The notes: generated by a model not told the origin, from the letters alone. Positions 11,730 through 64,000 are shown, numbered from the stretch's first letter. The stretch is 64,000 nucleotides of DNA from Macrostomum lignano (GCA_002269645.1 NIVC01002291.1:1-64000); one strand, 5' to 3'. Made by a program: numbers and translations.

Positions 11730-12409
11730 TGCAACAGCTGCTAGCGCCTATAAAAACTACGCTGATTTTCAGGTATACGAGCTAGACAGCGTCTCGGGTA
11801 GCAACTAAATTTTGTCTCTTTATATGCGATGGAGAGCGAGGCTGCGAAGAGACGTCAGGTAGGTGGACGGAACGCTTCTAGATTCCTCTCACCTTGCGTC
11901 CTCGTCTTCCCTAACCTCCGCCCGACCCTCCGGCCGATCATTTCTCCCCCCATCGGAGCGTGTTATTTTCGAAGCGGCCCGGGCGTTGCTAGGGGCAACG
12001 CCCCCCTTGGACTCGGTACTCGAGTTCAGGCAAGACAGGTGCAAAAGAGATGAGAAGAAGCGAGAGGCAGGCCAGGAAGACTGGAACTGTCTATCCGATT
12101 CCCATGGAATATTTGACTCACCTGTCGTGTCTTGGCTTGATTAGGCCGGCTCTACAAGGCGATTCGAGAGGAATTTCTAATTAACAAAATCCCTAGGGGC
12201 CAAAATTCGGCTGGAGCTTTCGAGTGACGAATTTCTGTTTTGGCGCCTTACCGGCCCCTAGCCGGTATATACTTTATACGGCCCCTAAATTTACATAATT
12301 TACAAAAATTATGTAAATTTATCTATGCCCCCTTCTGGGTCGCTTTCACAATCAGTAGCTTCAGTTTTGGGCTAGCGGAAGTGACTAACTAGCAAGAGCT
12401 TTCGACGCT

Positions 12410-16793: not shown

Positions 16794-27613
<10,820 letters not shown>

Positions 27614-37375: not shown

Positions 37376-40300
37376 ATGGCTACCTCCGGTGCGAGTGGGG
37401 ATGCTGGTGCCAGCGGATCTGGGTAATTTGCTGTTAGGCATTTTATTTTATCGATTTATTTCGCCTTTTAGAAGCAGCCTGTTGCATTATTGAAGCAATT
37501 TCAAATTTTAGATCTGGGCCTAGCTATCAACCAAATAAAAGGCTGCAACAGACTCAAGCTCAAGTTGATGAGGCAAGTGGTTAATACTCATATTGTATTA
37601 GACTGTTAGAGTTAGTAATTGTTCTTTAGGTACAGCTTCACGCCTTCCACCTCCCCGCCAGGTTGTCGGTATTATGCGCGTCAACGTTGAAAAAGTGATG
37701 CAACGCGATGAAAAGATTTCTGACTTGAATGAGCGAGCTGGTAAGTGGCTAATTTACACTTTCAAAACCTACCGCTGTGTTCCTACCGTTATGTCTTCTC
37801 TATGCATTTGTGTTAGTCCCCTATTTATGATAAACATTGGCGCTAACCTTCACTTACTTTCGCACTACTGGAAGAATATCTTTGGCCCTGTTAATCAATG
37901 TTGTCTTCTTTAATTTTAATTAGCTGTTTCTTTATTTGTGTTGTCTTTGCTAATTATTGCGTATCCTGCTGTTAACTAGGCCACCCCCTACTTATAGTAG
38001 TTTGCAGCTTAAACAGAATCAATCAATGACCAGAAAGCATCAGTGAGATTCCTCATCTCATCCTGTACCAGAAGGAATTAATGAGATTTCTCATCTCATC
38101 CTGTACCAGAAGAAATTAATGAGATTTCTCATCTCATCCTGTACCAGAAGGAATTAATGAGATTTCTCATCTCATCCTGTACCGGAAGGAATTAGTGAGA
38201 TTCCTCATCTCATTCTGTACCGGAAGGAATTAATGAGATTTCTCATCTCATTCTGTACCGGAAGGAATTAATGAGATTCCTCATCTCATCCTGTACCAGA
38301 AGGAATTAATGATATTCCTCATCTCATCCTGTACCAGAAGGAATTAATGAGATTTCTCATCTCATCCTGTACCAGAAGGAATTAATGAGATTCCTCATCT
38401 CATCCTGTACCAGAAGGAATTAATGAGATTCCTCATCTCATTCTGTACCGGAAGGAATTAATGAGATTCCTCATCTCATCCTGTACCAGAAGGAATTAAT
38501 GAGATTTCTCATCTCATTCTGTACCAGAAGGAATTAATGAGATTTCTCATCTCATCCTGTACCAGAAGGAATTAATGAGATTTCTCATCTCATCCTGTAC
38601 CAGAAGGAATTAGTGAGATTCCTCATCTCATTCTGTTGATATTTCTCATCCTGTGCCAGAAGGAGTTGGTAAGGTTTCTCATCTCATCTTGTACCAGAAG
38701 GAATTTCTGAGATTCCTCATCTCATCCTGTACCAGAATCAGTGAGATTTCTCATCCTGTCCAAGGCAAAACGAATGCCCCTTGTCATTTGCACCAAGACT
38801 ATAATATGTACCAAGACTAAACCCCGCTTACCGGCTGCACCACACGCCTCAGACGCCCTTCAGGCTGGCGCCTCCCGCTTTGAAGCCAGCGCCGGCCGTC
38901 TAAAACGAAAGTATTGGTGGCAAAACACCAAGGTACTGTGCTGCGAGTTGCCCGGCATGACTTTGAGTCGCTAATGCTGATTTAAGAGAGTAGAGAGTTA
39001 AATGATTGGCTCGGTTTTTGCGATTTTTTTAAACTACCAATTTATAAATTTTATCCAATCAACTGATTAAATGAGAATCATTGTTGACTTCCAACCTGCT
39101 TGACTATTCTTGGCTAACACCCTCCTAGATCTTCGAAAATCGGAATTCCTCAGTTCCTTAAATTAGAATAAGCAGCCAACATCTCATCTCCTCAGTTGCT
39201 GGGCCACCCTCTCAGATCCTCAGTTGCTGGTCCACCCTCTCAGATCCTCAGTTGCTGGTCCAGCCTCTCAGATCCTCAGTTGCTGGTCCAGCCTCTCAGA
39301 TCCTCAGTTGCTGGTCCAGCCTCTCAGATCCTCAGTTGCTGGTCCAGCCTCCCAGATCCTCAGTTGCTGGGTCAGCCTCCCAGATCCTCAGTTGCTGGTC
39401 CAGTCTCCCAGATCCTCAGTTGCTGGTCCAGTCTCCCAGATCCTCAGTTGCTGGTCCAGCCTCCCAGATCCTCAGTTGCTGGGCCAGCCTCCCAGATCCT
39501 CAGTTGCTGGTCCAGTCTCCCAGATCCTCAGTTGCTGGTCCAGTCTCCCAGATCCTCAGTTGCTGGTCCAGCCTCCCAGATCCTCAGTTGCTGGGCCAGC
39601 CTCCCAGATCCTCAGTTGCTGGTCCAGTCTCCCAGATCCTCAGTTGCTGGTCCAGCCTCCCAGATCCTCAGTTGCTGGGCCAGCCTCCCAGATCCTCAGT
39701 TGCTGGTCCAGCCTCCCGGATCCTCAGTTGCTGGTCCAGCCTCCCGGATCCTCAGTTGCTGGTCCAGCCTCCCGGATCCTCAGTTGCTGGTCCAGCCTCC
39801 CGGATCCTCAGTTGCTGGTCCAGCCTCCCAGATCCTCAGTTGCTGGTCCAGCCTCTCAAATCCTCAGTTGCTGGTCCAGCCTCCCAGATCCTCAGTTGCT
39901 GAGACAGCCTCGCAGATCCTCAGTTGCTGGGCCGCCCTTCAGATCCCCAGATTGAGCAACCAACATCGCAGATCCTAAACAGTAGTTAATTCTGTCCTAT
40001 AATCGAGAAATTGTGTATGATGCAGCCTTGCAGTACATTGTTTTGCTTCGATTGATTGCATTTTATCAACAATTTATACCTGCAATTAGCATGCTCACTG
40101 AACAAACCAATATCAATGGTTATTCAGCATAAAGTTCTACACTGATTTGCATTCACTTTTTAATTGCATTGCATTTTGCCACTAACAGACACTCTGCGCA
40201 TTGGGACGCAACAATTTTCTAATGTTGCCACCAGAATGAAACGAAAATACTGCTGGCAGAATGCCAAGGTTGCTCAATGCTTTTTATATACATATAACAT

Positions 40301-42579
40301 GCTTTTGAGTTTTGCTAGTAAAAATTAAGACCAAATTGTGTGCTGGGTTATCTTGACAGTAATTACTCGAAAAGTAACTCATCTAACCTTGCGTATATCA
40401 ATGCACTCGTGCTTCTCAAAAATTGTAACCAGGAGTTTTTTATTTAACTTTTATCTGTACCCCGGCGCATATATTTTATGTATGACCTGAATTGTCACGG
40501 GAAGTTAACACCAGCTAAAGCCCTTCGAAATGTTATTACAGTTATTTTTCACTCTGAAGATTTCACAAAATACAGAAATCTTCTATTTAGATTGCGTGGG
40601 CTGCCAGCCTCCCAGATCCTCAGTTGCTGGGCCAACCTCCCAAATCCTTAGTTGCTGGGTCAGCCTCCCAGATCTCCAGTTACTGGGCCAGCCTCCCAGA
40701 TCCTCAGTTGCTGGGCCACCCTCCCAAATCCTGAGTTGCTGGGCCAGCCTTCCAGATCTTTAGTTGCTGCACAAGCCTCCAAGATCCTCAGTCGGTGGAC
40801 CACCCTCCCAGATCCTCAGTTGCTGGGCCACCCTCTCAGATCCTCAGTTGCTGGTCCACCCTCCCAGTTCCTCAGTTGCTGGGCCAGCCTCCCAGTTCCT
40901 CAGTTGCTGGGCCAGCCTCCCAGATCCTTAGTTGCTGGGCCACCCTCCCAAATCCTCAGTTGCTGGGCTAGTCTCCCGGATCCCCAGTTGCTGGGCCAGC
41001 CTCCCAGATCCTCAGTTGCTGGGCCACCCTCCCAGTTCCTCAGTTACTGGGCCAGCCTCCCAGATCCTCAGTTGCTGGGCCAGCCTTCCAGATCCTCAGC
41101 TGCTGGGCCACCCTCCCAGTTCCTCAGTTGCTGGGCCAGCCTCCCAGTTCCTCAGTTGCTGGGCCAGCCTCCCAGATCCTTAGTTGCTGGGCCAGCCTCC
41201 CAAATCCTCAGTCGCTGGGCTAGTCTCCCGGATCCCCAGTTGCTGGGCCAGCCTCCCAGATCCTCAGTTGCTGGGCCAGCCTTCCAGATCCTTAGTTGCT
41301 GGACCAGCCTCCAAGATCATCAGTCGGTGGACCACCCTCCCAGATCCTCAGTTGCTGGGCCAGCCTACCAGATCTCCAGTTACTGGGCCAGCCTCCCAGA
41401 TCCTCAGTTGCTGGGCCAGCCTCCCAGTTCCTCAGTTGCTGGGCCAGCCTCCCAGATCCTGAGTTGCTGGGCCAGCCTCCCAGATCCTCAGTTGCTTGGC
41501 CAGCTTCCCAGATCCTGAGTTGCTGGGCCAGCCTTCCAGATCCTTAGTTGCTGCACAAGCCTCCAAGATCCTCAGTCGGTGGACCACCCTCCCAGATCCT
41601 CAGTTGCTGGGCCAGCCTCCCAGATCCTCAGTTGCTAGGCCAGCCTCCCAGATCCTCAGTTGCTAGGCCAGCCTCCCAGATCCTGATGCACCTGTAAAAA
41701 AGCTTTCATTGGTCTTTTAGTGGGAAGAAGGAAAAATGGCATATAACAACAAATCCATCTAAAAACGAACAGAAGTCATGCACTCAGACTTTGCTCCATT
41801 TTGCCAATGTTTTTTCAATGCTCGTTTTTACCTGCATAATCCAGTTTAACATGCAACAGTGAGAGTTTTCTGACTCGCCAATGCTAAATAACAGTATTTG
41901 ATTTTTTTTAAAGTTCCAGGCACATGCAGTACATCTAGTTTAAATTGTTTGTTTCAGATGATGCTCATCATCGGTGTCATTGTGGTTATCATCATACTCA
42001 TCATAATCAGTGAGTTCGGCCGGTCCGTTTTTCAGTGGGCTATGACCGAATCGATTTTAGTGGGTTATGACCGATCCTATTACAGTGGGTTATGACCGAT
42101 CCAATTTCAGTGGGTTATGACCGATCCGACTTCAGTGGGGTATGACCGATCCAATTTCAGTGGGTTATGACCGATCCGACTTCAGTGGGGTATGACCGAT
42201 CCAATTTCAGTGGGTTATGACCGATCCGACTTCAGTGGGGTATGACCGATCCAATTTCAGTGGGTTATGACCGATCCGATTTCAGTGGGTTATGACCGAT
42301 CCGACTTCAGTGGGGTATGACCGATCCAATTTCAGTGGGTTATGACCGATCCTACTTCAGTGGGTTATGACCGATCCTACTTCAGTGGGTTATGACCGAT
42401 CCTACTTCAGTGGGTTATGACCGATCCTACTTCAGTGGGTTATGACCAATGCAACCCAATTTAACTCAGTCTACTCAAACTGTCACCACAATAAATTTTC
42501 AGTCTCGGTGGTTAGCAGCAACAAAGGCGGCGGCGGCGGCGGTGGCGGCGGCAGCCCCACATCGGCGCCTGGTCGATAG
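37376..42579 (+). CDS. VAMP: synaptobrevin / VAMP (R-SNARE), ~131 aa
   Basis: Exons 37376-37422, 37512-37572 (GC donor), 37662-37740, 38853-38932, 41958-42009, 42503-42579; 396 nt. Protein: [131 protein letters not shown]; classic synaptobrevin SNARE motif, YWW and TM helix. Confidence 0.96.
38042..38762. repeat. intronic minisatellite, 38-bp unit GAGATTTCTCATCTCATCCTGTACCAGAAGGAATTAAT, ~18 copies
   Basis: Direct inspection. Confidence 0.95.
39190..39977. repeat. 28-bp minisatellite family (CAGATCCTCAGTTGCTGGGCCAGCCTCC), array 1
   Basis: Direct inspection; same family at 40598-41686, 43608-44063, 45923-46374 (+51391-51402), 53265-53665, 55427-55852. Confidence 0.96.
40189..40268 (+). CDS. 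VAMP: alternative (probably mutually exclusive) VAMP exon 4b, [27 protein letters not shown]
   Basis: ACTAACAG| acceptor and |GTTGCT donor; 80 nt with phase 1 in and phase 0 out, the same as exon 38853-38932; open frame, clearly paralogous. Confidence 0.82.
40598..41686. repeat. 28-bp minisatellite family, array 2 (left boundary of the quadruplicated cassette)
   Basis: Direct inspection. Confidence 0.95.
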
Positions 42580-45500
42580 AGAATCCGACACGAAAACGGT
42601 CTGTAGAAGCTGACAAAAATTTAAATTCTGACAAGTTAAGCAGTTTGACAGAAAGTCAAAGTATTCAAGCTGCGCTTAGATAATTTCTTTTTCGAGATAT
42701 TTTGGCACCGTACTTACCTTGCTAATTTAAAAAAAGCTCTCAGTCTCAGTAATTAATGTGTATTATTAGCAATTGCAATAAATGATAAAAATTTTGGAAT
42801 TGATAATCAAAATATCCTACTGTACATCTGTTCATTAGTAGTGCTTTTTGCGTATGTATAATTTGTTATTTTCCTTGTCTAAACAGTTTTCTGATTTGGT
42901 CACTAATTCCTTTGTTCGTTTAACGCGTGATATGCGGCATTTTGGCTATTGAGTAGCGTTGGTAAGAGAGGCCTGGTCAGTCTTCCTTCTAAAGAATTTC
43001 TAAATAAGCGCTACTGTTCTCAAAAAGTTGATTTACATAAACATAAACAAGCTTTTCTATACTGTTTGATACATCGGCTTTCTAAAATATAATGCCGAAA
43101 AAATTAGACTTTTTTGTGTCTTTAAGTAAATTTATTTTCAATAATAAATCTGCCTATGATGGGGGTTGAGCATTGTAGATGAAAATATCTCTATAGTAAT
43201 ATTGCGCATCTGTTGGTACTAATAGGTGGCAAATGTTCATTAGTAGTATGATAAAAGGTGAAAATTACGTGCTGCCGAATCATCATTTATATTATTGTAC
43301 CTATACTAGAGGGCAGGCAACCGTTACAGTAAAATGGGTCTGAAACTCGTTAAGAGCGTCACGCGTTAACATATTATATTTAGTGGGTTTCTAAAAATAG
43401 ATTTTGCTCGCTAATTCTGCCACTCGCAGTAATTGATCACTTTGGCTTGCTGAAGACCGTCTTCTGCAGATGCATAGCGCGCTCCTGTTAAGTGAGTACG
43501 GATTATAAAAGGTGGCGGGGCTAAGGCGCTTGTCAATCATTGGACTGATTGTAATTTTTTGTTTTCTTTGACGCCTGCGTGAAAAATGACCTGGGTCCCG
43601 GCGCTGCCAGATCCTCAGTTGCTAGGCCACCCTCTCAGATCCTCAGTTGCTGGGCCAGCCTCCCAGATCCTCAGTTGCTGGGCCAGCCTCCCAGATCCTC
43701 AGTTGCTGGGCCGCCCTTCAGATCCCCAGATTGAGCAACCAACATCGCAGATCCTCAGTTGCTGGGCCAGCCTCCCAAATCCTCAGTTGCTGGGCCAGCC
43801 TCCCAGATCCTCAGTTGCTGGGCCAGCCTCCCAGATCCTCAGTTGCTGGGCCAGCCTCCCAGATACTCAGTTGCTGGGCCAGCCACCCAGATCCTCAATT
43901 GCTAGGCCAGTCTCCCAGATCCTCAGTTGCTGGGCCAGTCTCCCAGATCCTCAGTTGCTGGGCCAGCCTCCCAGATCCTCAGTTGCTGGGCCAGTCTCCC
44001 AGATCCTCAGTTGCTGGGCCAGTCTCCCAGATCCTCAGTTGCTGGGCCAGCCTCCCAGATCCTGATGCACCTGTAAAAAAGCTTTCATTAGTCTTAGTGC
44101 GAAGAAGGAAAAATGGCATATAACAACAAATCCATCTAAAAACGAACAGAAGTCATGCACTCAGACTTTGCCCCAGTTTGCCAATGTTTTTTTCAATGCT
44201 CGTTTGTACTAGCATAATCCAGTTTAACATGCAACAGTGAGAGTTTTCTGACTCGCCAATGCTAAATAACAGTATTTGATTTTTTTAAAGTTCCAGGCAC
44301 CTGCGGTACATCTAGTTTAAATTGTTTGTTTCAGATGATGCTCATCATCGGTGTCATTGTGGTTATCATCATACTCATCATAATCAGTGAGTTCGGCCGG
44401 TCTGTTTTTCAGTGGGCTATGACCGAATCGATTTTAGTGGGTTATGACCGATCCGATTTCAGTGGGTTATGACCGATCCGACTTCAGTGGGTTATGACCG
44501 ATCCGATTTCAGTGGGTTATGACCAATCTTATTACAGTGGGTTATGACCGATCCAATTTCAGTGGGTTATGACCAATCCTATTACAGTGGGTTATGACCA
44601 ATCCTATTTCAGTGGGTTATGACCGATCCGACTTCAGTGGGTTATGACCGATCCAATTTCAGTGGGTTATGACCGATCCGATTTCAGTGGGTTATGACCG
44701 ATCCGACTTCAGTGGGTTATGACCGATCCAATTTCAGTGGGTTATGACCGATCCGATTTCAGTGGGTTATGACATTTAACATCAGTCTACTCAAACTGTC
44801 ACCGCAATAAATTTTCAGTCTCGGTGGTCAGTAGCAACAAAGGCGGCGGCGGCGGCGGTGGCGGCGGCAGCCCCACATCGGCGCCTGGTCGATAGAGAAT
44901 CCGACACGAAAACGGTCTGTAGAAGCTGACAAAAATTTAAATTCTGACAAGTTAAGCAGTTTGACAGAAAGTCAAAGTATTCAAGCTGCGCTTAGATAAT
45001 TTCTTTTTCGAGATATTTTGGCACCGTACTTACCTTGCTAATTTAAAGAAAGCTCTCAGTCTCAGTAATTAATATGTATTAATAGCAATTGCAATAAATG
45101 ATAAAAATTTTGGAACTAATAATCAAAATATCCTACTGTACATCTGTTCATTAGTAGTGCTTTTTGCGTATGTATAATTTGTTATTTTCCTTGTCTAAAC
45201 AGTTTTCTGATTTGGTCACTAATTCCTTTGTTCGTTTAACGCGTGATATGCGGCATTTTGGCTATTGAGTAGCGTTGGTAAGAGAGGCCTGGTCAGTCTT
45301 CCTTCTAAAGAATTTCTAAATAAGCGCTACTGTTCTCAAAAAGTTGATTTACATAAACATAAACAAGCTTTTCTATACTGTTTGATACATCGGCTTTCTA
45401 AAATATAATGCCGAAAAAATTAGACTTTTTTGTGTCTTTAAGTAAATTTATTTTCAATAATAAATCTGCCTATGATGGGGGTTGAGCATTGTAGATGAAA

Positions 45501-46374
45501 ATATCTCTATAGTAATATTGCGCATCTGTTGGTACTAATAGGTGGCAAATGTTCATTAGTAGTATGATAAAAGGTGAAAATTACGTGCTGCCGAATCATC
45601 ATTTATATTATTGTACCTATACTAGAGGGCAGGCAACCGTTACAGTAAAATGGGTCTGAAACTCGTTAAGAGCGTCACGCGTTAACATATTATATTTAGT
45701 GGGTTTCTAAAAATAGATTTTGCTCGCTAATTCTGCCACTCGCAGTAATTGATCACTTTGGCTTGCTGAAGACCGTCTTCTGCAGATGCATAGCGCGCTC
45801 CTGTTAAGTGAGTACGGATTATAAAAGGTGGCGGGGCTAAGGCGCTTGTCAATCATTGGACTGATTGTAATTTTTTGTTTTCTTTGACGCCTGCGTGAAA
45901 AATGACCTGGGTCCCGGCGCTGCCAGATCCTCAGTTGCTAGGCCACCCTCTCAGATCCTCAGTTGCTGGGCCACCCTCTCAGATCCTCAGTTGCTGGGCC
46001 ACCCTCTCAGATCCTCAGTTGCTGGGCCAGCCTCCCAGATCCTCAGTTGCTGGGCCAGCCTCCCAGATCCTCAGTTGCTGGGCCAGCCTCCCAGATCCTC
46101 AGTTGCTGGGCCGCCCTTCAGATCCCCAGATTGAGCAACCAACATCGCAGATCCTCAGTTGCTGGGCCAGCCTCCCAAATCCTCAGTTGCTGGGCCAGCC
46201 TCCCAGATCCTCAGTTGCTGGGCCAGCCTCCCAGATCCTCAGTTGCTGGGCCAGCCTCCCAGATACTCAGTTGCTGGGCCAGCCTCCCAGATCCTCAATT
46301 GCTAGGCCAGTCTCCCAGATCCTCAGTTGCTGGGCCAGTCTCCCAGATCCTCAGTTGCTGGGCCAGCCTCCCAG

Positions 46375-49300
46375 CAAGGACTACTTAAGTATCGTTTATA
46401 GAAGGACGCTGCACTCGCGGTTCGTGTAATTTTTTTTGAAGGCCAATTTTCGCCGAAAAATACATTAACGAGATACAAAAAATTCACGATTTTCATCTTC
46501 AATGGCTTGCTCAGACTGACTACAACCCTGCTGAAAAGAAAAAACTGCTGAAACTTATCAAAAAGACCTAGTGTATTCGCTCCTCTATTGTATTTCGCCA
46601 AGTTAGTGTCCTTGACACGTTTACTTTTAAATACTTCGTATTTTTTCGAGGGTTTTCAATTCTGTAATGTTAAATGTTAAAGGTTGGATTAAAGTGTTAG
46701 TTTCTCTCAATAATCAGTAGTTTCTTTAGCATTCTATGATGACTGCTTTCTATGTCTTTATTTTTTTGGTAAATTTAAATTAGCTATAGACATTCTATAT
46801 TAAATGTTAGTCTATACCCTGGCTATGCCTGATATATAATAATATCTAGGGCCTACTATGCTTTTTTAGCATGTTCTACAAAAATGTTGTGTAGAAAGGA
46901 CCTACTGATTAGTTTATGAGTAGATCGTTATAAAGTATTATTCTTAATTTGAAGGTAGATAGATATTAGATACTTGCATATTGTATAGAAGGTACTAATT
47001 TTACTATTCTGTCAAATATCTGTAGATTAGGCTTCTTAAACGGTTCTACTGGATACAAAAGTTCTATTTTCAGACTTGTCTTGAAACTTTATATTTTATT
47101 TAAATGATAGGCCTAACAACATATTGAATTTATTTCTGCTGTTTGGAGAGCAGTTTTTTAACCTAGTCTAGTTTAATGGAACCAAGATATATTCAATACT
47201 CAGGCCTTGCATTGAATTTAAAATATAAATATTTATATATAGAAAGTGATTCTAAAGGAAAATGCGTATAATAGACTTTAGAAGACAAATTTTCAACTTT
47301 AGTAATACTATTGAAGTGATTTAGTATAGAATTGATTATATTGGCCTGTTGGGATAAAAGCAATACAGTATTGTAGCAATTTTTTTACTAGATATAATGT
47401 ATAGAAGCTGTATATATTTCTTTTTGTTAGCTTCAGAATTTCTGCAATGCCAATGAAATGCTGTCTTCCAAAGTGTACAAGTAACTACAAATCTGGTGAG
47501 AAGGTGACAGTGTATAGCTTTCCAAAGGATAAAGAAGACTACAGCATGTGGATCCGAGCTTTGCCACCAAATGTTAAGGTATGGTGCTATTGCTGCTATT
47601 GCATATTCTTGTCTTGCTTAATTCACATGCTAATGGAACATTAGTACAATATGATATAATACTTACTGTTTTAGAGTCCATCTAAATACATGGGCATTTG
47701 CCAAAAACATTGGCCAACAAATGCACCAATGTTAAAGGTCAAGCGATTCATGCGCCCTATGGACCCACCAAGTGTATTCCCAAATCTTCCAACAGGCTCT
47801 CTTCGCCTGACTGAGCCAAGTAAGTATATCTCATAGCAAGGTTAAATATTACAGTTTGTACCAAATGATAGGCTTTCTATAATATTTTACTTAATTAAGT
47901 TTTTGTCTGATTTCATACCTTACATATTATTATTCTTACTTCAGAGCACTCTAGAGATGTTCAACGCCGCGGTATTCTGTTAAACCAGCGGGCTCAAATT
48001 GCTGATGAAATGGACTCATTCAATGAGACTGATCGGATTCACTCATGGAGTTCCTTTGTTGAGAAATCTGCCACCCTTGACTTCGTTGCAAATGAGTGGA
48101 TAGTGCAGCGTGACGAATCATGTGTGCGATTTGTCCTTCTTTGGGAACTAAGAGTTGAATGCTCAATTTCAGTCATGTCCGACTTTTCTGTTATTGCAAA
48201 TCGTCATAACACCCCAGTGTCAGTGTCTGAGCTGCTGGGTTTTCAACATCGACTTGAGCGCTACAGCCAATTGGAAGCAGTACAAAATAAAGTTCGACAA
48301 GCTGAAGTAAATCCAATCAAGGAATTCAATGCATATTTGGACGCACTACAGCCACTTTGTCAGGAGCTGCAGAACCCGCGCCATTCATTCCTTGTTCGAC
48401 AGCTGCAACTGAGTGTTGTTCAGCATCATGGCGTACGGTATGCTGCAAATGATATAATGACAGCTGCCAGAATGTACTTCACCAGTCGTGCTGGCTATCG
48501 TGCAATGAGAGAGTTCGCCTGTCTACCACATCCAGACACTCTCAAACGTCATCTGGGTGGACTTGGCAGCATTGGAACCGACACCGACTGTCAGCAAATT
48601 GTCAAGTCGAATTTCGAACACAACACACCGTCTCAGTGCCTGTGCTCAATCATCTTTGATGAAGTGTATGTGCAACCTTCACTTCGTCTCAAAGGTGTCC
48701 ATGTAGTTGGCTTTGCTGAGGATGTTCCACAGAAGCTTGCTCGGACTATTCTCGCCATTATGGTAAAACCATTTATGGGCGCACCTGCGTTTGTTGCCAG
48801 ACTTGTGCCAATCTATAGTTTACAGCCTGCGTTTTTACACAGACAGGTTGTACGACTTATTGAAATTGTCCACGGCTGTGGTGGTACAGTTGTGAGCTTC
48901 ATTTGCGATAATCACTTCACTAACCAGAACTGTTTCAAACTGTTTCATTGCGACACAAACACACCATGGCTTGCCGAAAACCCTGCAGACGCAGAGAAAC
49001 CATTGTTTCTGTTGTTTGACACAGTGCATTTGTTTAAGAATATAAGAAATAATTGGTTCACTCAAGCGCACAAGGAGATCGATTTTCACCCATCAGCAGA
49101 TAAGCAGGAACGTGTTTGCCGAGCACGCTGGAATGATATTGTTGAAATCGAGGAGCGATCCCGTGGACAAGTAGTTCGCCCGACTTCAGTCAACTCTGTC
49201 GCGTGCAATCCGTCTCCACTGGAGCGACAAAAGGTGTCACTAGTTGTCGACATCTTCAACGAGAAGACGGTTGCCGCACTTCGTGTTAACGGTCGCCATG

Positions 49301-51390
49301 ACTCAGCCGACTTTGTGGACCATGTGGTCACCTTTTGGAAAATAGTTAATGTTAAATCACCAGAATCACACGTTGCCTTGAATGACAAACTTAGGGCTCC
49401 AATTACGTCGGAAGAATCTAGCAGCTTGACACATTTACTTAATTTCTCCGCACTGGTGGAGCGCATGCCGGGTGGACGAGGTGCGGGACGCGGTCGGTCG
49501 CTCACCACAGAGACGCGCAACGCTTTAATCCAGACAACAAGAGGTCTGGTGGGCCTCAGCAGACACCTTCTAACCAACCATCGATTTTCTTACGTTCTTC
49601 TTGGTGAGTTCTTTGCATTATTTACATGCAGCAATCAGTTTTTGAATAATTGTTGCTAGGGAATGAATTTAATGAATTGTGGGGATGCAGGTCACGGCTA
49701 TCTAATGGGTCACGAAATTGTCTTTAAGGTGTACTGCAATCAGACAGATTGGAGGCCGAGTTCGCTCTCTACCGCCAGGGCCACGGCGGGTGTTACTACA
49801 TAACAGTCGAGCAAGTTATGGCCAGTGCTCGGCTGCACCGAATGAAATTGTACGGAGCGCTTCAGAACAGCTTTGAGGCTCATGAGCCGGCGACATGCTG
49901 TTCCGATGGGATGAAGGACTCTGATCTAGAGGTGTTTGATCAGCTTCAAGACAAGATCAGCCACAATACAGATGAGGAGAATGCTTCTTTGTACTATATT
50001 TCCGGTTACGTTGCTGCTAAAGAGCATCTTCCAGAAGTTTTTGAAGCATTTGCAACTGAGTTTCCTGGCGGTAGCGAATTTACATCGCTGCTATCTCGTG
50101 GCAAGCTCCGGCACCCGCCAGAGTGGCTTTTAGTTTTCTCCAGCCTGTGCTATGCTTTTTTCTCCTCTGTCAAGATCCACTGCGTCAACTATTGTGTCCG
50201 ATCTTTTATTAACGTTTTTGAAGCTTTCATGGATGTAACTGTTTCAGATCCAGCTCAGGTTAGCCGCATTTCCAGGAGGTTAGCTAACACATTTTTTAAA
50301 GGACTCGTGCGTCGTGATTCGGACCATGTACGAGAGACGCCCGGCAGTGGACGGCGTCTGCGAAAGTTAGCATCAAGTTAGTTATGAGCTGTTTGTACGC
50401 TTTTTGAGAAATCCGTGACATTCTATCAACACACCGAGTTCGTATAAAACTTGAACACCCATTGTACACTTAGACACCTCTAATTTAAACAAACGAAGTG
50501 GACACTGGAAAATATCGAAATATCCAACCAAAAATGCAATAAGCCAAAATCGGAGGCAACATAGCTCGTAGAATTGAAGCGAACATTGTTAATTGATTGA
50601 GCATGTAATTTGACCCATAGTCCATGGTTGTCCATGTTTTATACAGACCCAATTCACATTCACGTCATTGAATATGCTTATGCTTTCATAAGTTGGTTTA
50701 TGCATCTGTTGCTGCTTTCATACGTTGGTTTAAACATTTGTTGCTGCTTTCATAAGTTGGTTTCTGCATTTTACTGCTGTTGCCTACCCAATAGTTGCCA
50801 CAGTTTCTATACACTATACACTATACACAGTCTTATATTTGCAGCCTTACATACATATTTGCCTTACTGTAGCTATCAATTGAGATTAAAGTACAATGAG
50901 CTGCTGTGCAACAAGCAACCAGTTCAGTTCAACATTTTTTGTTTCCAGTCCAACAACGATACATCGATTGTTATCAGCACTGGCATTGTGCCAGTTTCTC
51001 TGCTTTTGCTCTTTGTTATTTTATTGTTGAAAAGATCAGGGATGGCTTTTGAAAAGTACAGACTGACGGGCTTCGTTCTTTGTTAATCTCATCTCATTTT
51101 AATTGGATTACATTAGCTCAATTGTCGGAATTATCCTTTAAATATCCTAGCTTTATTGTTCTATAATAAAGAAGGGGGTAACAGTACCTTGCTGTACATT
51201 TCTCGCGAATACATGTAGTTGCAGCCGAAACTGTTCACTCATCTAAAAGAGGAATAAATTCTGAGCAACCCCGTGAAAAAACTAGACCTCTACATGCAAC
51301 CATTTAAAAATAACAGCATTTTGAAAAATGGCCTTCAAAAAAATCTACACCATTCGGGAGTGCAGCGTCCTTCTACTTAAGTAGTCCTTG
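46375..51390 (+). mobile_element. P-superfamily (THAP-domain) DNA transposon, 5016 bp, apparently full length
   Basis: TIR CAAGGACTACTTAAGTA[TCGTTTATA, left only]GAAGGACGCTGCACTC...TTTTTTGAAGGCCA(A/T)TTTT, ~65 bp and imperfect; 8-bp TSD CCTCCCAG at 46367-46374 and 51391-51398; CA...TG termini. Confidence 0.95.
47447..50381 (+). CDS. P-element/THAP9-like transposase, 4 exons, ~862 aa
   Basis: Exons 47447-47578, 47675-47819, 47945-49603, 49729-50381, GT-AG, phases 0/1/1 consistent, no stops. THAP (CCLPKC...FPKD...W...CQKHW...PPSVF); RNase H-like motifs IIFDEVYV, ICDNHFTN, FDTVHLFKNIRNNW, QSDRLEAEF; C-terminal LYYISGYVA. Confidence 0.92.
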
Positions 51391-54300
51391 CCTCCCAGAT
51401 CCTGATGCACCTGTAAAAAAGCTTTCATTAGTCTTAGTGCGAAGAAGGAAAAATGGCATATAACAACAAATCCATCTAAAAACGAACAGAAGTCATGCAC
51501 TCAGACTTTGCCCCAGTTTGCCAATGTTTTTTTTCAATGCTCGTTTGTACTAGCATAATCCAGTTTAACATGCAACAGTGAGAGTTTTCTGACTCGCCAA
51601 TGCTAAATAACAGTATTTGATTTTTTTAAAGTTCCAGGCACCTGCGGTACATCTAGTTTAAATTGTTTGTTTCAGATGATGCTCATCATCGGTGTCATTG
51701 TGGTTATCATCATACTCATCATAATCAGTGAGTTCGGCCGGTCTGTTTTTCAGTGGGCTATGACCGAATCGATTTTAGTGGGTTATGACCGATCCGATTT
51801 CAGTGGGTTATGACCGATCCGACTTCAGTGGGTTATGACCGATCCGATTTCAGTGGGTTATGACCAATCCTATTACAGTGGGTTATGACCGATCCAATTT
51901 CAGTGGGTTATGACCAATCCTATTACAGTGGGTTATGACCAATCCTATTTCAGTGGGTTATGACCGATCCGACTTCAGTGGGTTATGACCGATCCAATTT
52001 CAGTGGGTTATGACCGATCCGATTTCAGTGGGTTATGACCGATCCGACTTCAGTGGGTTATGACCGATCCAATTTCAGTGGGTTATGACCGATCCGATTT
52101 CAGTGGGTTATGACATTTAACATCAGTCTACTCAAACTGTCACCGCAATAAATTTTCAGTCTCGGTGGTCAGCAGCAACAAAGGCGGCGGCGGCGGCGGT
52201 GGCGGCGGCAGCCCCACATCGGCGCCTGGTCGATAGAGAATCCGACACGAAAACGGTCTGTAGAAGCTGACAAAAATTTAAATTCTGACAAGTTAAGCAG
52301 TTTGACAGAAAGTCAAAGTATTCAAGCTGCGCTTAGATAATTTCTTTTTCGAGATATTTTGGCACCGTACTTACCTTGCTAATTTAAAGAAAGCTCTCAG
52401 TCTCAGTAATTAATATGTATTAATAGCAATTGCAATAAATGATAAAAATTTTGGAACTAATAATCAAAATATCCTACTGTACATCTGTTCATTAGTAGTG
52501 CTTTTTGCGTATGTATAATTTGTTATTTTCCTTGTCTAAACAGTTTTCTGATTTGGTCACTAATTCCTTTGTTCGTTTAACGCGTGATATGCGGCATTTT
52601 GGCTATTGAGTAGCGTTGGTAAGAGAGGCCTGGTCAGTCTTCCTTCTAAAGAATTTCTAAATAAGCGCTACTGTTCTCAAAAAAGTTGATTTACATAAAC
52701 ATAAACAAGCTTTTCTATACTGTTTGATACATCGGCTTTCTAAAATATAATGCCGAAAAAATTAGACTTTTTTGTGTCTTTAAGTAAATTTATTTTCAAT
52801 AATAAATCTGCCTATGATGGGGGTTGAGCATTGTAGATGAAAATATCTCTATAGTAATATTGCGCATCTGTTGGTACTAATAGGTGGCAAATGTTCATTA
52901 GTAGTATGATAAAAGGTGAAAATTACGTGCTGCCGAATCATCATTTATATTATTGTACCTATACTAGAGGGCAGGCAACCGTTACAGTAAAATGGGTCTG
53001 AAACTCGTTAAGAGCGTCACGCGTTAACATATTATATTTAGTGGGTTTCTAAAAATAGATTTTGCTCGCTAATTCTGCCACTCGCAGTAATTGATCACTT
53101 TGGCTTGCTGAAGACCGTCTTCTGCAGATGCATAGCGCGCTCCTGTTAAGTGAGTACGGATTATAAAAGGTGGCGGGGCTAAGGCGCTTGTCAATCATTG
53201 GACTGATTGTAATTTTTTGTTTTCTTTGACGCCTGCGTGAAAAATGACCTGGGTCCCGGCGCTGCCAGATCCTCAGTTGCTAGGCCACCCTCTCAGATCC
53301 TCAGTTGCTGGGCCACCCTCTCAGATCCTCAGTTGCTGGGCCACCCTCTCAGATCCTCAGTTGCTGGGCCAGCCTCCCAGATCCTCAGTTGCTGGGCCAG
53401 CCTCCCAGATCCTCAGTTGCTGGGCCAGCCTCCCAGATCCTCAGTTGCTGGGCCGCCCTTCAGATCCCCAGATTGAGCAACCAACATCGCAGATCCTCAG
53501 TTGCTGGGCCAGCCTCCCAAATCCTCAGTTGCTGGGCCAGCCTCCCAGATCCTCAGTTGCTGGGCCAGCCTCCCAGATCCTCAGTTGCTGGGCCAGCCTC
53601 CCAGATCCTCAGTTGCTGGGCCAGTCTCCCAGATCCTCAGTTGCTGGGCCAGCCTCCCAGATCCTGATGCACCTGTAAAAAAGCTTTCATTAGTCTTAGT
53701 GCGAAGAAGGAAAAATGGCATATAACAACAAATCCATCTAAAAACGAACAGAAGTCATGCACTCAGACTTTGCCCCAGTTTGCCAATGTTTTTTTCAATG
53801 CTCGTTTGTACTAGCATAATCCAGTTTAACATGCAACAGTGAGAGTTTTCTGACTCGCCAATGCTAAATAACAGTATTTGATTTTTTTAAAGTTCCAGGC
53901 ACCTGCGGTACATCTAGTTTAAATTGTTTGTTTCAGATGATGCTCATCATCGGTGTCATTGTGGTTATCATCATACTCATCATAATCAGTGAGTTCGGCC
54001 GGTCTGTTTTTCAGTGGGCTATGACCGAATCGATTTTAGTGGGTTATGACCGATCCGATTTCAGTGGGTTATGACCGATCCGATTTCAGTGGGTTATGAC
54101 CAATCCTATTACAGTGGGTTATGACCGATCCAATTTCAGTGGGTTATGACCAATCCTATTACAGTGGGTTATGACCAATCCTATTTCAGTGGGTTATGAC
54201 CGATCCGACTTCAGTGGGTTATGACCGATCCAATTTCAGTGGGTTATGACCGATCCGATTTCAGTGGGTTATGACATTTAACATCAGTCTACTCAAACTG

Positions 54301-55255
54301 TCACCGCAATAAATTTTCAGTCTCGGTGGTCAGCAGCAACAAAGGCGGCGGCGGCGGCGGTGGCGGCGGCAGCCCCACATCGGCGCCTGGTCGATAGAGA
54401 ATCCGACACGAAAACGGTCTGTAGAAGCTGACAAAAATTTAAATTCTGACAAGTTAAGCAGTTTGACAGAAAGTCAAAGTATTCAAGCTGCGCTTAGATA
54501 ATTTCTTTTTCGAGATATTTTGGCACCGTACTTACCTTGCTAATTTAAAGAAAGCTCTCAGTCTCAGTAATTAATATGTATTAATAGCAATTGCAATAAA
54601 TGATAAAAATTTTGGAACTAATAATCAAAATATCCTACTGTACATCTGTTCATTAGTAGTGCTTTTTGCGTATGTATAATTTGTTATTTTCCTTGTCTAA
54701 ACAGTTTTCTGATTTGGTCACTAATTCCTTTGTTCGTTTAACGCGTGATATGCGGCATTTTGGCTATTGAGTAGCGTTGGTAAGAGAGGCCTGGTCAGTC
54801 TTCCTTCTAAAGAATTTCTAAATAAGCGCTACTGTTCTCAAAAAAGTTGATTTACATAAACATAAACAAGCTTTTCTATACTGTTTGATACATCGGCTTT
54901 CTAAAATATAATGCCGAAAAAATTAGACTTTTTTGTGTCTTTAAGTAAATTTATTTTCAATAATAAATCTGCCTATGATGGGGGTTGAGCATTGTAGATG
55001 AAAATATCTCTATAGTAATATTGCGCATCTGTTGGTACTAATAGGTGGCAAATGTTCATTAGTAGTATGATAAAAGGTGAAAATTACGTGCTGCCGAATC
55101 ATCATTTATATTATTGTACCTATACTAGAGGGCAGGCAACCGTTACAGTAAAATGGGTCTGAAACTCGTTAAGAGCGTCACGCGTTAACATATTATATTT
55201 AGTGGGTTTCTAAAAATAGATTTTGCTCGCTAATTCTGCCACTCGCAGTAATTGA

Positions 55256-58200
55256 TCACTTTGGCTTGCTGAAGACCGTCTTCTGCAGATGCATAGCGCG
55301 CTCCTGTTAAGTGAGTACGGATTATAAAAGGTGGCGGGGCTAAGGCGCTTGTCAATCATTGGACTGATTGTAATTTTTTGTTTTCTTTGACGCCTGCGTG
55401 AAAAATGACCTGGGTCCCGGCGCTGCCAGATCCTCAGTTGCTAGGCCACCCTCTCAGATCCTCAGTTGCTGGGCCACCCTCTCAGATCCTCAGTTGCTGG
55501 GCCACCCTCTCAGATCCTCAGTTGCTGGGCCACCCTCTCAGATCCTCAGTTGCTGGGCCACCCTCTCAGATCCTCAGTTGCTGGGCCACCCTCTCAGATC
55601 CTCAGTTGCTGGGCCACCCTCTCAGATCCTCAGTTGCTGGGCCACCCTCTCAGATCCTCAGTTGCTGGGCCACCCTCTCAGATCCTCAGTTGCTGGGCCA
55701 CCCTCTCAGATCCTCAGTTGCTGGGCCACCCTCTCAGATCCTCAGTTGCTGGACCACCCTCCCAGATCCTCAGTTGCTGGGCCACCCTCTCAGATCCTCA
55801 GTTGCTGGGCCAGCCTCCCAGATCCTCAGTTGCTAGGCCACCCTCTCAGATCCCTATCCCTCCATCACCTGTCCCTCCTCGTTCAGCAGCACCGTCTGCG
55901 CAGTTTTTCCCATCTCCCAGCGGCGAACAGCCGGCAGCTCGATGTTCACGCTGCCGGCTTCGTCATCGTCATCGGAAGTTGCGTCGGCTGTCGGGTCGGG
56001 CTGCTGGCCGGCCGCCCAGAGCCTCACCAGCTGGCCCGGCTCGATCACCAGCATCGGCAGCGACACCTCCGGGCTCGACTGGCTGGCCCGGCCGTCCACC
56101 GTGCGACGGATGCGCCAGCCGCTGAGCCGCTCGGTCTGGGAAGTTCGGTAGCGCCTGCGGCTGCTGGAGCGCTGGACTGCTTCTCACCCTCTACTCAGTC
56201 TGTGCCTTGTCACTCCGCGCCTGTGTCACACTCTGTCTCACCACCTGTCTGTCTCACCATCTGCCTGTCTCACCATCTGTCTGCCTCACCACCTGTCTGT
56301 CTCACCATCTGCCTGTCTCACCATCTGTCTGCCTCACCACCTGTCTGTCTCACCATCTGCCTGTCTCACCATCTGCCTGTCTCACCATCTGTCTGTCTCA
56401 CCATCTGCCTGTCTCACCACCTGTCTGTCTCACCATCTGTCTGTCTCACCATCTGTCTGTCTCACCATCTGCCTGTCTCACCACCTCTGTCTCACCATCT
56501 GCCTGTCTCACCACCTGTCTGTCTCACCATTTGCCTGTCTCACCACCTGTCTGTCTCACCATCTGTCTGTCTCACCATCTGTCTGTCTCACCACCTGTCT
56601 GTCTCACCATCTGTCTGTCTCACCATTTGCCTGTCTCACCACCTGTCTGTCTCACCATCTGCCTGTCTCACGATCTGTCTGTCTCACCATCTGCCTGTCT
56701 CACCACCTGTCTGTCTCACCATCTGTCTGTCTCACGATCTGTCTGTCTCACCATCTGTCTGTCTCACCATCTGTCTGTCTCACGATCTGTCTGTCTCACC
56801 ATCTGCCTGTCTCACCATCTGTCTGTCTCACCACCTGTCTGTCTCACCATCTGCCTGTCTCACTATCTGTCTGTCTCACCACCTGTCTGTCTCACCATCT
56901 GCCTGTCTCACTATCTGTCTGTCTCACCACCTGTCTGTCTCACCATCTGCCTGTCTCACCATCTGCCTGTCTCACCACCTGCCTGTCTCACCCTCTTCCA
57001 CTCTAGATAAAGAAATGAATTCACCAGCGCACCTTTGTGCCGACATTCCGCAGTTTGACGCAGGCCCCATCCTGCGAGCACTCGTCGATGCACACGTTGC
57101 CCTTGTAGGTTTTCTCGTATTGGGTCTTGGCCGTGATCTCCGAAGTCACCGCCTGCACAGGCTGGTAGCTGGCGACTGGAGGGCGCGGGAGGGCCAGACA
57201 GAATGCAGATATCTTGTTTGCTAGAAATGCACTACTATATATTGTTGGCCAATGTACTTTTAGGAGTGTCCAGAAGGGTACTTTAAGGTGTCCTCTTGCT
57301 TTTAAAGTGTGCAAGTACTAAATGTACTGCGATCTTGACCTATTGGCCTATGATGTAGTAACTTGAGTTAATAAATTAATTAATTAACAAATTAACAAAA
57401 ACGCACTACAGGGGCGTACTCATTTTGAGAATGAACTCTCTTAAAGCCAGTTTAGGTTTTTAAAAAGAAAGAATCAACAAGCCGCAATGATTATTGCATA
57501 TTTTGTGCATTTTTCAATGGCTATTTGCCTGCCAGCGGTTTCTCAAGTTTCAGTACTTAAAAAGTAGCAAGTTGCGGGTTTGTAGATATTTATTTGTCCT
57601 GTTTATTTTTATTGAAAACTTTCCTTATTCACGCAACAGTAATGCGATGCGAAGAAAGTATTTTTGGCTGCAATTAGACGGTCAATTCAATAGTTGTAGC
57701 TTTAGCAGGAAATCTGTGTTAGATTTTGATCAAGCACTGCTGATAATTAACCTTCACTAAAGGAAGCAGAGAGTATTGTAGATAATAGCTAGGCTCTATT
57801 GGATGTATCGATCAATTGAATTATTATTGCATGCGATATGAAAAAACAGGTACCGTGCGACAAACTACTGTTTTAATATAGCTTTTTGCGTTCAATTTCA
57901 GAATATAGCTTATTCTGCAAAAAGCGCAAAAAGCTATACTTCTACAGTCAATTTTCTATGCCTGCAATATAAGCTAAAGACTAAGTGTAAAAGCGAAAAA
58001 ACGGGAAAATTGAAAAAATAATCAGTATGCAGATTCTTATAAAGCCTCGGATGCAGTTTCATCTCAAATTTACATGTATGCTTAGCTGCTTGTTTACATA
58101 CATTTAGGCATGGATTGCAATGTCCACTATGTGGGGAGTGAGGTGACTGCGAGACTGGCTAATTGGGGCGGGGAGTGAGCTGTGGCTGCGAGACTGATTG

Positions 58201-59183
58201 GGGCAGGGAGTGAGGTGGCTGCGAGACTGATAAGGGACAGGGAGTGAGGTGGCTGCGAGACTGATAAGGGGCAGGGAGTGAGCTGTGGCTGCGAGACTGA
58301 TAAGGGGCAGGGAGTGAGGTGGCTGCGAGACTGATTGGGGCAGGGAGTGAGGTGGCTGCGAGACTGATAAGGGGCAGGGAGTGAGGTGGCTGCGAGACTG
58401 ATAAGGGGCAGGGAGTGAGCTGTGGCTGCGAGACTGATAAGGGGCAGGGAGTGAGCTGTGGCTGCGAGACTGATTGGGGCAGGGAGTGAGCTGTGGCTGC
58501 GAGACTGATTGGGGCAGGGAGTGAGGTGGCTGCGAGACTGATAAGGGGCGGGGAGTGAGCTGTGGCTGCGAGACTGATAAGGGGCAGGGAGTGAGCTGTG
58601 GCTGCGAGACTGATTGGGGCAGGGAGTGAGGTGGCTGCGAGACTGATAAGGGGCAGGGAGTGAGCTGTGGCTGCGAGACTGATTGAGGCAGGGAGTGAGG
58701 TGGCTGCGAGACTGATTGGGGGTAGGGAGTGAGGCGGTCGTGAGAGGGGCCAATCGGAGGCAAAAAATTTTAGGGCGCTAAAATGTCAGCAGTTACAGTT
58801 AAAAGAACTTACATGTAAAAATCAAGAAACTGCTCAAAAGCCAACAGAACGGCACTGCCGTCATCTTACTACAGAGTTTAGATGAAAAAAATAGTTTGTA
58901 AAACAATAAAAAAAGATGAATAAACAAGAGCAAAGCTTTAACTTACTCGCCATAAATTTAGTAAGGAATAGTACGAATACTCCACTAGCCAATGATAGAG
59001 AAGGAAATTGAATTAATTTTTTGGAAAAATAGGGGTTGGACACAGTTAGCGCCAGACAGACTTAGATATTGGTGCCGCTCGGAGTGGAATAGACCTGCTG
59101 CTGTTGCTGATGTCTGTACGGCGATGACGAAGGCGGAACGGCTCGGCGAATCTCCGTCGAGCTGCCGCTGATGCTGCCGATGC

Positions 59184-59217
<34 letters not shown>

Positions 59218-63375: not shown

Positions 63376-63384
63376 CTGGGCGGG

Positions 63385-64000
63385 TGGGTTTGGGGTGGGT
63401 TCTGTTTGGGGTGGGTTCTGTTTGGGGTGGGTTCTGTTTGGGGTGGGTTCTGTTTGGGGTGGGTTCTGTTTGGGGTGGGTTATGTTTGTGGTGGGTTCTG
63501 TTTGGGGTGGGTTCTGTTTGGGATGGGTTCTGTTTGAGATGGGTTCTGTTTGGGGTGGGTTCTGTTTGGGATGGGTTCTGTTTGGGGTGGGTTCTGTTTG
63601 GGGTGGGTTCTGTTTGGGGTGGGTTCTGTTTGGGGTGGGTTCTGTTTGGGTGGGTTTCTGTTTGGGATGGGTTCTGTTTGGGGTGGGTTCTGTTTGGGGT
63701 GGGTTCTGTTTGGGGTGGGTTCTGTTTGTGGTGGGTTCTGTTTGGGATGGGTTATGTTTGTGGTGGGTTCTGTTTGGGGTGGGTTCTGTTTGGGATGGGT
63801 TCTGTTTGAGATGGGTTCTGTTTGGGGTGGGTTCTGTTTGGGGTGGGTTCTGTTTGGGGTGGGTTCTGTTTGGGGTGGGTTCTGTTTGGAGTGGGTTCTG
63901 TTTGGGTGGGTTCTGTTTGGGATGGGTTCTGTTTGGGATGGGTTCTGTTTGGGGTGGGTTCTGTTTGGGGTGGGTTCTGTTTGGGGTGGGTTCTGTTTGG
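63385..64000. repeat. intronic satellite, 16-bp unit GGGGTGGGTTCTGTTT, runs off the window
   Basis: Direct inspection. Confidence 0.96.

Follow-up and report, generated by a model that had tools for sequence, protein, structure and literature searches.

The repeated cassette

The 64,000-nucleotide stretch of Macrostomum lignano DNA analysed here (GCA_002269645.1 NIVC01002291.1:1-64000; hereafter the window) contains a synaptobrevin/VAMP gene on the + strand and an intermediate-filament (IF) gene on the - strand, and the 3' ends of these convergent genes lie together in a cassette that is present in four copies. Comparison of the first unit with the whole window by self-BLAST, together with MAFFT alignment, revealed four head-to-tail direct copies of a unique unit of 1.76-1.92 kb, and Tandem Repeats Finder (TRF) placed a 28-bp minisatellite array after every copy. 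After removal of a transposon and correction for its 8-bp target-site duplication (TSD), the cassette periods are 2379, 2316, 2262 and 2188 bp. An earlier reading of this DNA (the sequence-only reading) had proposed two convergent genes, VAMP and IF, whose terminal exons sit in a four-copy cassette of 2.2-2.4 kb. Self-BLAST, MAFFT and exact searches bore out the cassette, its four copies in the window and its position, and the two genes were recognized by Pfam (Synaptobrevin 3e-33, Filament 2e-28, LTD 7e-11).

Each copy holds the VAMP transmembrane (TM) exon and the VAMP last exon on the + strand, and the IF last exon on the - strand. The copies (c1 to c4) were delimited by self-BLAST, MAFFT and exact string search, and the c1 exons by exact string search:

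41685-43606, exons on both strands: cassette copy 1 (c1)
41958-42009, +: c1 TM exon
42030-42447, +: c1 25-bp array, in the last VAMP intron
42503-42579, +: c1 VAMP last exon
42777, +: c1 VAMP AATAAA
43131-43136, -: c1 IF AATAAA
43437-43484, -: c1 IF last exon, coding sequence
44064-45922, exons on both strands: cassette copy 2 (c2)
44335-44386 (+), 44819-44895 (+) and 45753-45800 (-): c2 TM, VAMP last and IF last exons
51404-53264, exons on both strands: cassette copy 3 (c3)
51676-51727 (+), 52160-52236 (+) and 53095-53142 (-): c3 TM, VAMP last and IF last exons
53666-55426, exons on both strands: cassette copy 4 (c4)
53937-53988 (+), 54321-54397 (+) and 55256-55303 (-): c4 TM, VAMP last and IF last exons
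44407-44773, 51748-52114 and 54009-54275, +: 25-bp arrays of c2, c3 and c4

The copy closest to the remainder of the IF gene is c4. Searches of the cassette with Rfam and ARAGORN gave no match.

The VAMP gene

The VAMP gene was located by tblastn with human VAMP2, and its exons were then read off the sequence. The exons upstream of the cassette, found by tblastn and direct reading, are as follows:

37376-37422, +: VAMP exon 1
37512-37572, +: VAMP exon 2, with a GC donor
37662-37740, +: VAMP exon 3
38853-38932, +: VAMP exon 4
40189-40268, +: VAMP exon 4', a duplicate that has diverged from exon 4 (tblastn and sequence)

According to exact string searches, the TM exon (52 nt, with TTTCAG and GTGAGT splice sites) is identical in all four copies of the cassette, and the last exon encodes one peptide in all of them. 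The assembled protein comprises 131 amino acids and matches Pfam Synaptobrevin (PF00957) over residues 24-110 (E 2.9e-33, 114 bits). Invertebrate synaptobrevins are 67-82% identical to it, and the homolog search returned no identical protein. The invariant alignment columns include the zero-layer residue R61 (DLNERADALQ) and the juxtamembrane residues K82, Y83, W84 and W85.

In the MAFFT alignment, the peptide of the duplicated TM exon lines up with the TM segments of the homologs and is the predicted anchor, and the tail encoded by the last exon (VVS..G8-9.P.T..P) is kept in homologs P0003 and P0005, which have Gly-rich luminal tails. One of them, P0003, is encoded without interruption on a 1,159-bp Logan run-assembly contig. 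The last exon was first proposed from splice motifs, and the assignment holds because the tail is conserved in these two homologs; this conservation is read from the MAFFT alignment, as the BLASTP pairwise alignment ended before the TM segment and the tail (low complexity).

Intron 2 needs a non-canonical GC donor (GAG/GCAAGT, 37573-37574) to keep the frame, and the nearest GT, 4 nt downstream, would break it. Exons 4 and 4', which cover the C-terminal half of the SNARE motif, are both 80 nt long, have equal phases and are bounded by AG and GT sites; the two together would shift the frame, and therefore they look like a mutually exclusive pair. The isoform with exon 4' scores 105 bits against Synaptobrevin, compared with 114 for exon 4. 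Exon 4' lies within a 0.63-kb unique island that separates two of the minisatellite arrays described below (A0 and A1). In the last VAMP intron, nearly all 25-bp units carry an acceptor-like (T/C)TTCAG motif, which gives 16, 14, 14 and 10 potential decoy acceptors in c1, c2, c3 and c4, respectively, just upstream of the real TTTTCAG acceptor.

The intermediate-filament gene

The IF gene was located by tblastn with vimentin. Its exons, listed from the cassette towards the right end of the window, are as follows:

Four copies, -: IF last coding exon, ERAMHLQKTVFSKPK followed by the stop; acceptor TTAACAG identical in all four (exact search)
55869-56135, -: IF penultimate coding exon (TERLSGW...NEEGQ, lamin-tail domain, LTD); donor CAG/GTGATG; tblastn of protein P0121, 98.9% identity
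~57033-57150, -: start of the IF LTD, approximate (tblastn, open frames)
~60967-61212, 61560-61690, 62275-62434 and 63093-63479, -: IF rod exons, approximate (tblastn with vimentin, open frames, Pfam)

The upstream exons thus span 57033-63479 (-), and the gene continues past the right end of the window. The rod exons match Pfam Filament (PF00038, E 2.3e-28), with the head and coil 1A lying outside the window, and the rod terminus, LELEIAAYKKLLDAEG, fits a YRKLLEGEE-like motif. The tail matches Pfam LTD (PF00932) with an E-value of 6.6e-11 and 43 bits, the cut-off being 34.3. This match covers profile positions 4-105 of 109 with the duplicated exon and 4-74 without it; therefore, the duplicated exon completes the LTD fold. 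The CaaX box that marks nuclear lamins, as opposed to cytoplasmic IF proteins, was not found at the C-terminus, which ends in ...TVFSKPK or, in an alternative model, in ...ENLLW.

The homolog search with the IF tail gave a single match, UniProt A0A1I8IT99, an LTD domain-containing protein of M. lignano that is 99% identical and joins NEEGQ directly to ERAMHLQKTVFSKPK, matching the proposed exon junction. An exact-protein look-up of P0121 found nothing recorded. The UniProt protein continues beyond the IF stop: on the minus strand, a donor overlapping the TGA (CCAAA/GTGATC, at 43439/43440) is joined to an acceptor at ~42604 (CTACAG/ACCG), after which the protein runs antisense through the VAMP last exon. 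The positions of this stop-skipping donor and acceptor also exist in copies 2-4. A0A1I8IT99 has seven prolines where the window has nine, and one S-to-F change, and therefore derives from another copy or assembly.

The known adhesion gene macif1 was considered as a candidate for the IF gene. It is reported to be 74% identical to a planarian IF (PMC4016567). The query made of the IF tail and rod end found no planarian homolog at E<=1e-3, so the gene in the window is probably not macif1.

Minisatellite arrays and the transposon at the junctions

The arrays of the 28-bp minisatellite, all on the + strand, are the following:

39189-39975, +: A0, in VAMP intron 4 (TRF, unit listing)
40603-41684, +: A1, degenerate (86% matches), immediately upstream of c1 (TRF, unit listing)
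43607-44063, +: A2, hybrid; one CCACCCTCT-type unit, two standard units, a 55-bp motif and 11 CCAG(C/T)CTCCC-type units
45923-46374, +: A3, hybrid; final unit broken by the transposon
53265-53665, +: A4, hybrid (unit listing)
55427-55853, +: A5, uniform array of CCACCCTCT units within the last IF intron, stopping 15 nt short of the IF splice donor

The satellite gave 116 matches in the window against 0 expected, all in the + orientation and confined to 39.2-55.9 kb. It flanks the unit in direct orientation, with A1 upstream and A5 downstream. The outer boundaries and all the junctions of the cassette fall in this satellite, as had been claimed, and it is absent elsewhere in the 64 kb.

The three arrays between cassette copies (A2, A3 and A4) have a common tripartite layout. 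Their left part opens with an AGG-CCACCCTCT unit, as in A5, and continues with 0-2 further CCACCCTCT units; the middle part consists of 2-3 standard CCAGCCTCCC units followed by the 55-bp variant motif; and the right part is made of CCAG(C/T)CTCCC units and runs into the junction of ...CCTCCCAGATCCT with GATGCAC, which also closes A1. They differ from each other only by gains or losses of whole 28-bp units. The shared layout demonstrates their descent from one founder junction and argues against three independent joins. Hybrid arrays of this form, downstream-type on the left and upstream-type on the right, are predicted by unequal exchange between two arrays.

A different derivation, in which the unit was inserted into one continuous array, was suggested by CAGATCCT, which flanks the unit like an 8-bp TSD. 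It was rejected, since the right end of the unit is a degenerate 28-mer, so that repeat phase is enough to account for the CAGATCCT match, and since the unit carries the exons of the flanking genes in the correct phase.

By eye, ~23 of 29 positions match between the latter half of the 55-bp motif (AGATTGAGCAACCAACATCGCAGATCCTC) and the unique sequence immediately left of A0 (AGAATAAGCAGCCAACATCTCATCTCCTC, 39165-39193), a hint that flank and array had been duplicated together at an earlier time.

The last 28-mer of A3, between c2 and c3, is occupied by the only copy of a DNA transposon found within the window:

46375-51390, +: P-element-superfamily DNA transposon, 5016 bp (terminal inverted repeats, TSD, Pfam domains)

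Its terminal inverted repeats are perfect and 17 bp long (CAAGGACTACTTAAGTA), with 53-nt subterminal inverted repeats in addition, and the 8-bp TSD, CCTCCCAG, is located at 46367-46374 and 51391-51398. A THAP exon (~47405-47641; Pfam THAP PF05485, E 3.3e-5) and a transposase open reading frame of 549 amino acids (48010-49659; TNP-like_RNaseH_N PF21787, E 4.7e-7) were identified, both above the cut-off, and this combination of domains assigns the element to the THAP9-like P-element superfamily. The exact-protein look-up of the open reading frame found nothing recorded. The transposon is apparently intact and young. Its presence at one junction only indicates that it was inserted after that junction existed, and that c2 and c3 are physically distinct places.

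Differences among the copies

Outside the 25-bp array, c2, c3 and c4 are mutually 99.93-100% identical in the MAFFT alignment, and c1 is 98.6% identical to them. The 24 private differences of c1 all fall within 666 non-array bp of 41711-42802 (3.6%), whereas the remaining 804 bp, made up of the IF 3' untranslated region (UTR), exon and intron stub, have none; under uniformity, the probability of so uneven a spread is about 6e-9. The divergence stops at 42.80-43.02 kb, between the VAMP AATAAA (42777) and the IF AATAAA (43136-43131, -). The proposal that copy 1 is the outlier thus stands for its left (VAMP) half and fails for its IF half. The 25-bp arrays contain 16.7, 14.7, 14.7 and 10.7 repeat copies in c1, c2, c3 and c4 (TRF); the c1 array is set apart by private variant units and an 11-bp indel where it ends, and the c2-c4 arrays have a common variant order and differ by one single-nucleotide polymorphism (SNP) or by a clean four-unit deletion. 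The variation in array length and the four SNPs quoted earlier (41924 A/C, 41928 A/G, 42513 T/C and 42516 C/T) were confirmed. The private c1 sites of the VAMP last exon and 3' UTR include 42513, 42732, 42758, 42766, 42800 and 42802; among the IF modules, the copies are distinguished just by intron length and an A-run indel at 43021.

The coding exons are intact in all copies, as the sequence-only reading had observed, but this observation loses its functional weight, since c2-c4 differ by 0-1 substitutions per ~1470 bp. The intact frames reflect youth and not selection, because these copies are 99.9-100% identical. Selection as the cause was rejected: c2-c4 are nearly identical everywhere, and the only coding differences among the copies, at 42513 and 42516, are synonymous on both strands.

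The same near-identity bears on whether the array is real. An assembler could have made or inflated it, either by threading reads of different subgenomes or haplotypes via the 28-bp satellite or through a contig that is chimeric at ~42.8 kb; if so, the real copy number would be lower, or the left flank would be misrepresented. Consistent with this are the absence of any substitution between c3 and c4 over 1469 bp, with one in c2, and the abrupt switch from 3.6% to 0% inside c1, which can be set against the SNP divergence of 1.9-2.4% that PMC10733133 gives for the three subgenomes (S, L1 and L2) of M. lignano DV1. Assemblies of this species are, moreover, described as chimeric and redundant in PMC5730564 and PMC10733133: the former counts 180 Mb of duplicated non-repetitive blocks in Mlig_3_7, and the latter assigns 36% of the length of that assembly, which may not be the assembly of the window, to S/L-chimeric scaffolds.

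Copies derived from different subgenomes would, however, be expected to differ by ~2% and not by 0-0.07%. The tripartite layout of A2-A4 is not a splice of the contig's A5 and A1, and therefore did not arise from overlapping those arrays. The differences between copies come as clean whole units (four 25-bp units; 28-bp units) and not as noisy lengths, the TSD-flanked transposon is present at just one junction, and there are no Ns anywhere in the window. A chimeric join at 42.8 kb would alter the history of c1 and leave three or more young copies. The sequence-only reading had held the transposon and the copy-specific variants against an artefact; this was a reasonable argument, although not a decisive one in view of the subgenome-chimeric fraction of Mlig_3_7 reported in PMC10733133. 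On balance, we regard a complete or partial artefact as unlikely.

Proposed amplification and its origin

We consider it likely that the structure is real and that it arose very recently, through repeat-mediated tandem amplification of the tail-to-tail junction of VAMP and IF; most likely it is neutral. The ancestral state would have been a single 1.9-kb segment with the VAMP TM exon, last exon and 3' UTR and the IF last exon and 3' UTR, with 28-bp arrays on either side in direct orientation, located in VAMP intron 4 and in the last IF intron. In the founding step, the two arrays would have mispaired, duplicating the segment and creating a hybrid junction array, by unequal exchange between sister chromatids or homologs or by replication template switching. 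Later unequal exchange among the 2.3-kb repeats would have led to four copies, after which the P-element-type transposon would have been inserted into junction array A3.

Several points weigh against this reconstruction. The 55-bp motif of A2-A4 recurs without change at the 3' end of A0 (39922-39975), where it leads into the 0.63-kb exon-4' island and not into more 28-mers, and it is absent from both A1 and A5; likewise, CCAGTCTCCC units are found in the hybrid arrays and in A0 and are absent from A1 and A5. The count of exactly four is that of this one assembled sequence, the near-identity of c2-c4 is equally expected from over-expansion during assembly, and the presumed usage of the nearest copies, considered below, is deduced from geometry. 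With neither the 55-bp motif nor the CCAGTCTCCC units in A1, a simple exchange between A1 and A5 in the present haplotype fails to yield the hybrids. Of the earlier proposal of unequal exchange between intronic arrays, the hybrid layout of A2-A4 fits the exchange itself, but the present A1 is not simply its upstream parent.

The misfit of the 55-bp motif and the divergence of half of c1 would both be explained by a foreign haplotype or subgenome to the left of ~42.8 kb. The divergence of c1 stops abruptly there, which speaks for a left flank of recombinant or chimeric origin and against an older first copy. Most likely, another haplotype or subgenome came in at 42.80-43.02 kb, by crossover or by a switch in the assembly, and gave rise to the divergence of the VAMP half; greater age is probably not the cause.

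The separate history of the VAMP half and 25-bp array of c1, with their variant units and 11-bp indel, could also be attributed to concerted evolution after an old duplication into two copies. In that case, c1 and the ancestor of c2-c4 were ~3.6% apart, the second copy was amplified again, and homogenisation by gene conversion was confined to the IF half of c1; the edge copies of tandem arrays are, in general, typically the most divergent. We find this history highly improbable. It needs an additional conversion, with a tract that stops precisely at the limit of the divergence and has left no residual difference over at least 800 bp, and the absence from A1 of the motif common to all the hybrid arrays stays unexplained, whereas a single haplotype or subgenome crossover or switch covers both facts.

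Transcript ends and possible function

Judged by geometry only, VAMP exon 4 (or 4') would splice to c1, the nearest module, with polyadenylation at ~42.8 kb, and the IF donor at 55869 would be joined to the acceptor of c4 at 55303, the nearest one. The copies c2 and c3, the IF half of c1 and the VAMP half of c4 would then be redundant, with equal coding capacity. The placement of the poly(A) signals fits this nearest-copy usage.

Within one unit, ~350 bp separate the VAMP AATAAA (42777) from the IF AATAAA (43136-43131, -). A distal VAMP signal at 43143 would overlap the IF 3' UTR. The presumed used 3' ends, in c1 and c4, are now ~11.7 kb apart, compared with ~0.35 kb. These distances, together with A0A1I8IT99, which skips the IF stop and runs antisense through the VAMP last exon with an acceptor found in all four copies, would suit a functional amplification, in which the copies supply alternative terminal exons or poly(A) sites, regulate the two genes in sense/antisense fashion, or form a stack of spacers or terminators. 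This appears very unlikely to us. Identical peptides and nearly identical UTRs in all copies bring no isoform gain, c2-c4 are too young to show a signal of selection, A0A1I8IT99 may be an ab initio prediction, and rearrangements driven by minisatellites should be common in the M. lignano genome and for the most part neutral. For the same reason, the spare terminal modules and alternative last exons envisaged in the sequence-only reading provide no isoform diversity, as all four copies encode identical peptides. A most improbable variant is that the amplification uncouples the convergent VAMP and IF units, whose terminal modules are 7-12 kb apart compared with ~0.35 kb between poly(A) signals, and that copy number tunes both; the middle copies would then be stacked terminators and perhaps substrates for the stop-skipping antisense IF isoform. 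The recent amplification of the VAMP/IF junction is most likely a neutral structure.

Comparison with known systems

The human LPA kringle IV-2 repeat is a 5.5-kb two-exon unit, and the haptoglobin allele HP2 carries a 1.7-kb intragenic duplication. By analogy, the cassette can be classed as a tandem exon-cassette repeat, and its mechanism as repeat-mediated unequal exchange of the same kind as in LPA KIV-2 or HP2. As in these loci, a head-to-tail segment of kilobase scale with whole exons and their splice sites is present in near-identical copies, later growth by unequal exchange among the repeats would apply, and variable copy number is to be expected. In contrast to them, the M. lignano cassette bridges two convergent genes, both of which contribute terminal exons with poly(A) signals. 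LPA KIV-2 and HP2 repeat in-frame internal exons of one gene, whereas the extra copies described here lie beyond the first poly(A) site of each gene and cause no lengthening of either protein. The recombining substrate also differs, being here a 28-bp intronic minisatellite.

Alternative 3' terminal exons are known from mod(mdg4) and lola of Drosophila and from mammalian VAMP1 A/B, and some mod(mdg4) modules are located on the opposite strand. VAMP genes vary their extreme C-terminus through the choice of the last exon. The cassette resembles these systems in having several terminal-exon modules downstream of common exons. Their modules, however, encode different peptides and are of documented use, whereas the four modules of M. 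lignano are identical in coding and known from genomic sequence.

The window, with more than 20 minisatellites, is similar to the M. lignano genome at large, a recently polyploid one for which repeats and duplicated blocks are described in PMC5730564 and PMC10733133; the first of these gives a content of 15% tandem and simple repeats. Against such a minisatellite-rich background, duplications of this kind are expected. The consulted portions of both papers deal with genome-wide statistics and subgenome structure, and not with this locus or with the co-amplification of the 3' ends of two genes. A literature search on unequal crossing over of minisatellites with exon duplication in introns found nothing.

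If real, the locus offers a clean, datable snapshot of intronic minisatellites remodelling gene ends, in which two genes have their terminal exons, UTRs and poly(A) signals duplicated together by a single exchange. It would provide raw material for alternative last exons and alter the spacing of convergent transcription. The cassette is a likely copy-number polymorphism, and the private SNPs of c1 in the VAMP last exon and 3' UTR make the usage of VAMP copies directly testable. The locus also marks a site of possible subgenome assembly chimerism in M. lignano. The current understanding of duplication mechanisms is left unchanged.

Other features of the window

The unrelated minisatellites, many of them intronic, are distributed over 7.6-26.5 kb, 38.0-38.8 kb and 56.2-64.0 kb. 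They include the following:

12409-14054: 16-bp minisatellite, 103 copies
22325-23435: 55-bp minisatellite, 20 copies
38029-38636: 38-bp minisatellite, 16 copies
56232-56996: 16-bp minisatellite, 48 copies
63331-64000: minisatellite array, continuing past the window end

At 62762-62831 (+), in an IF intron, there is a weak Rfam match to tRNA (30.6 bits, with a gathering score of 29), where ARAGORN reported no tRNA; it is possibly the remnant of a tRNA-derived short interspersed element. At 1317-5400 (+), long open frames are rich in Cys-rich motifs and in WSxW/CSxTCG motifs of the thrombospondin type 1 kind, and are probably part of an extracellular-matrix gene.

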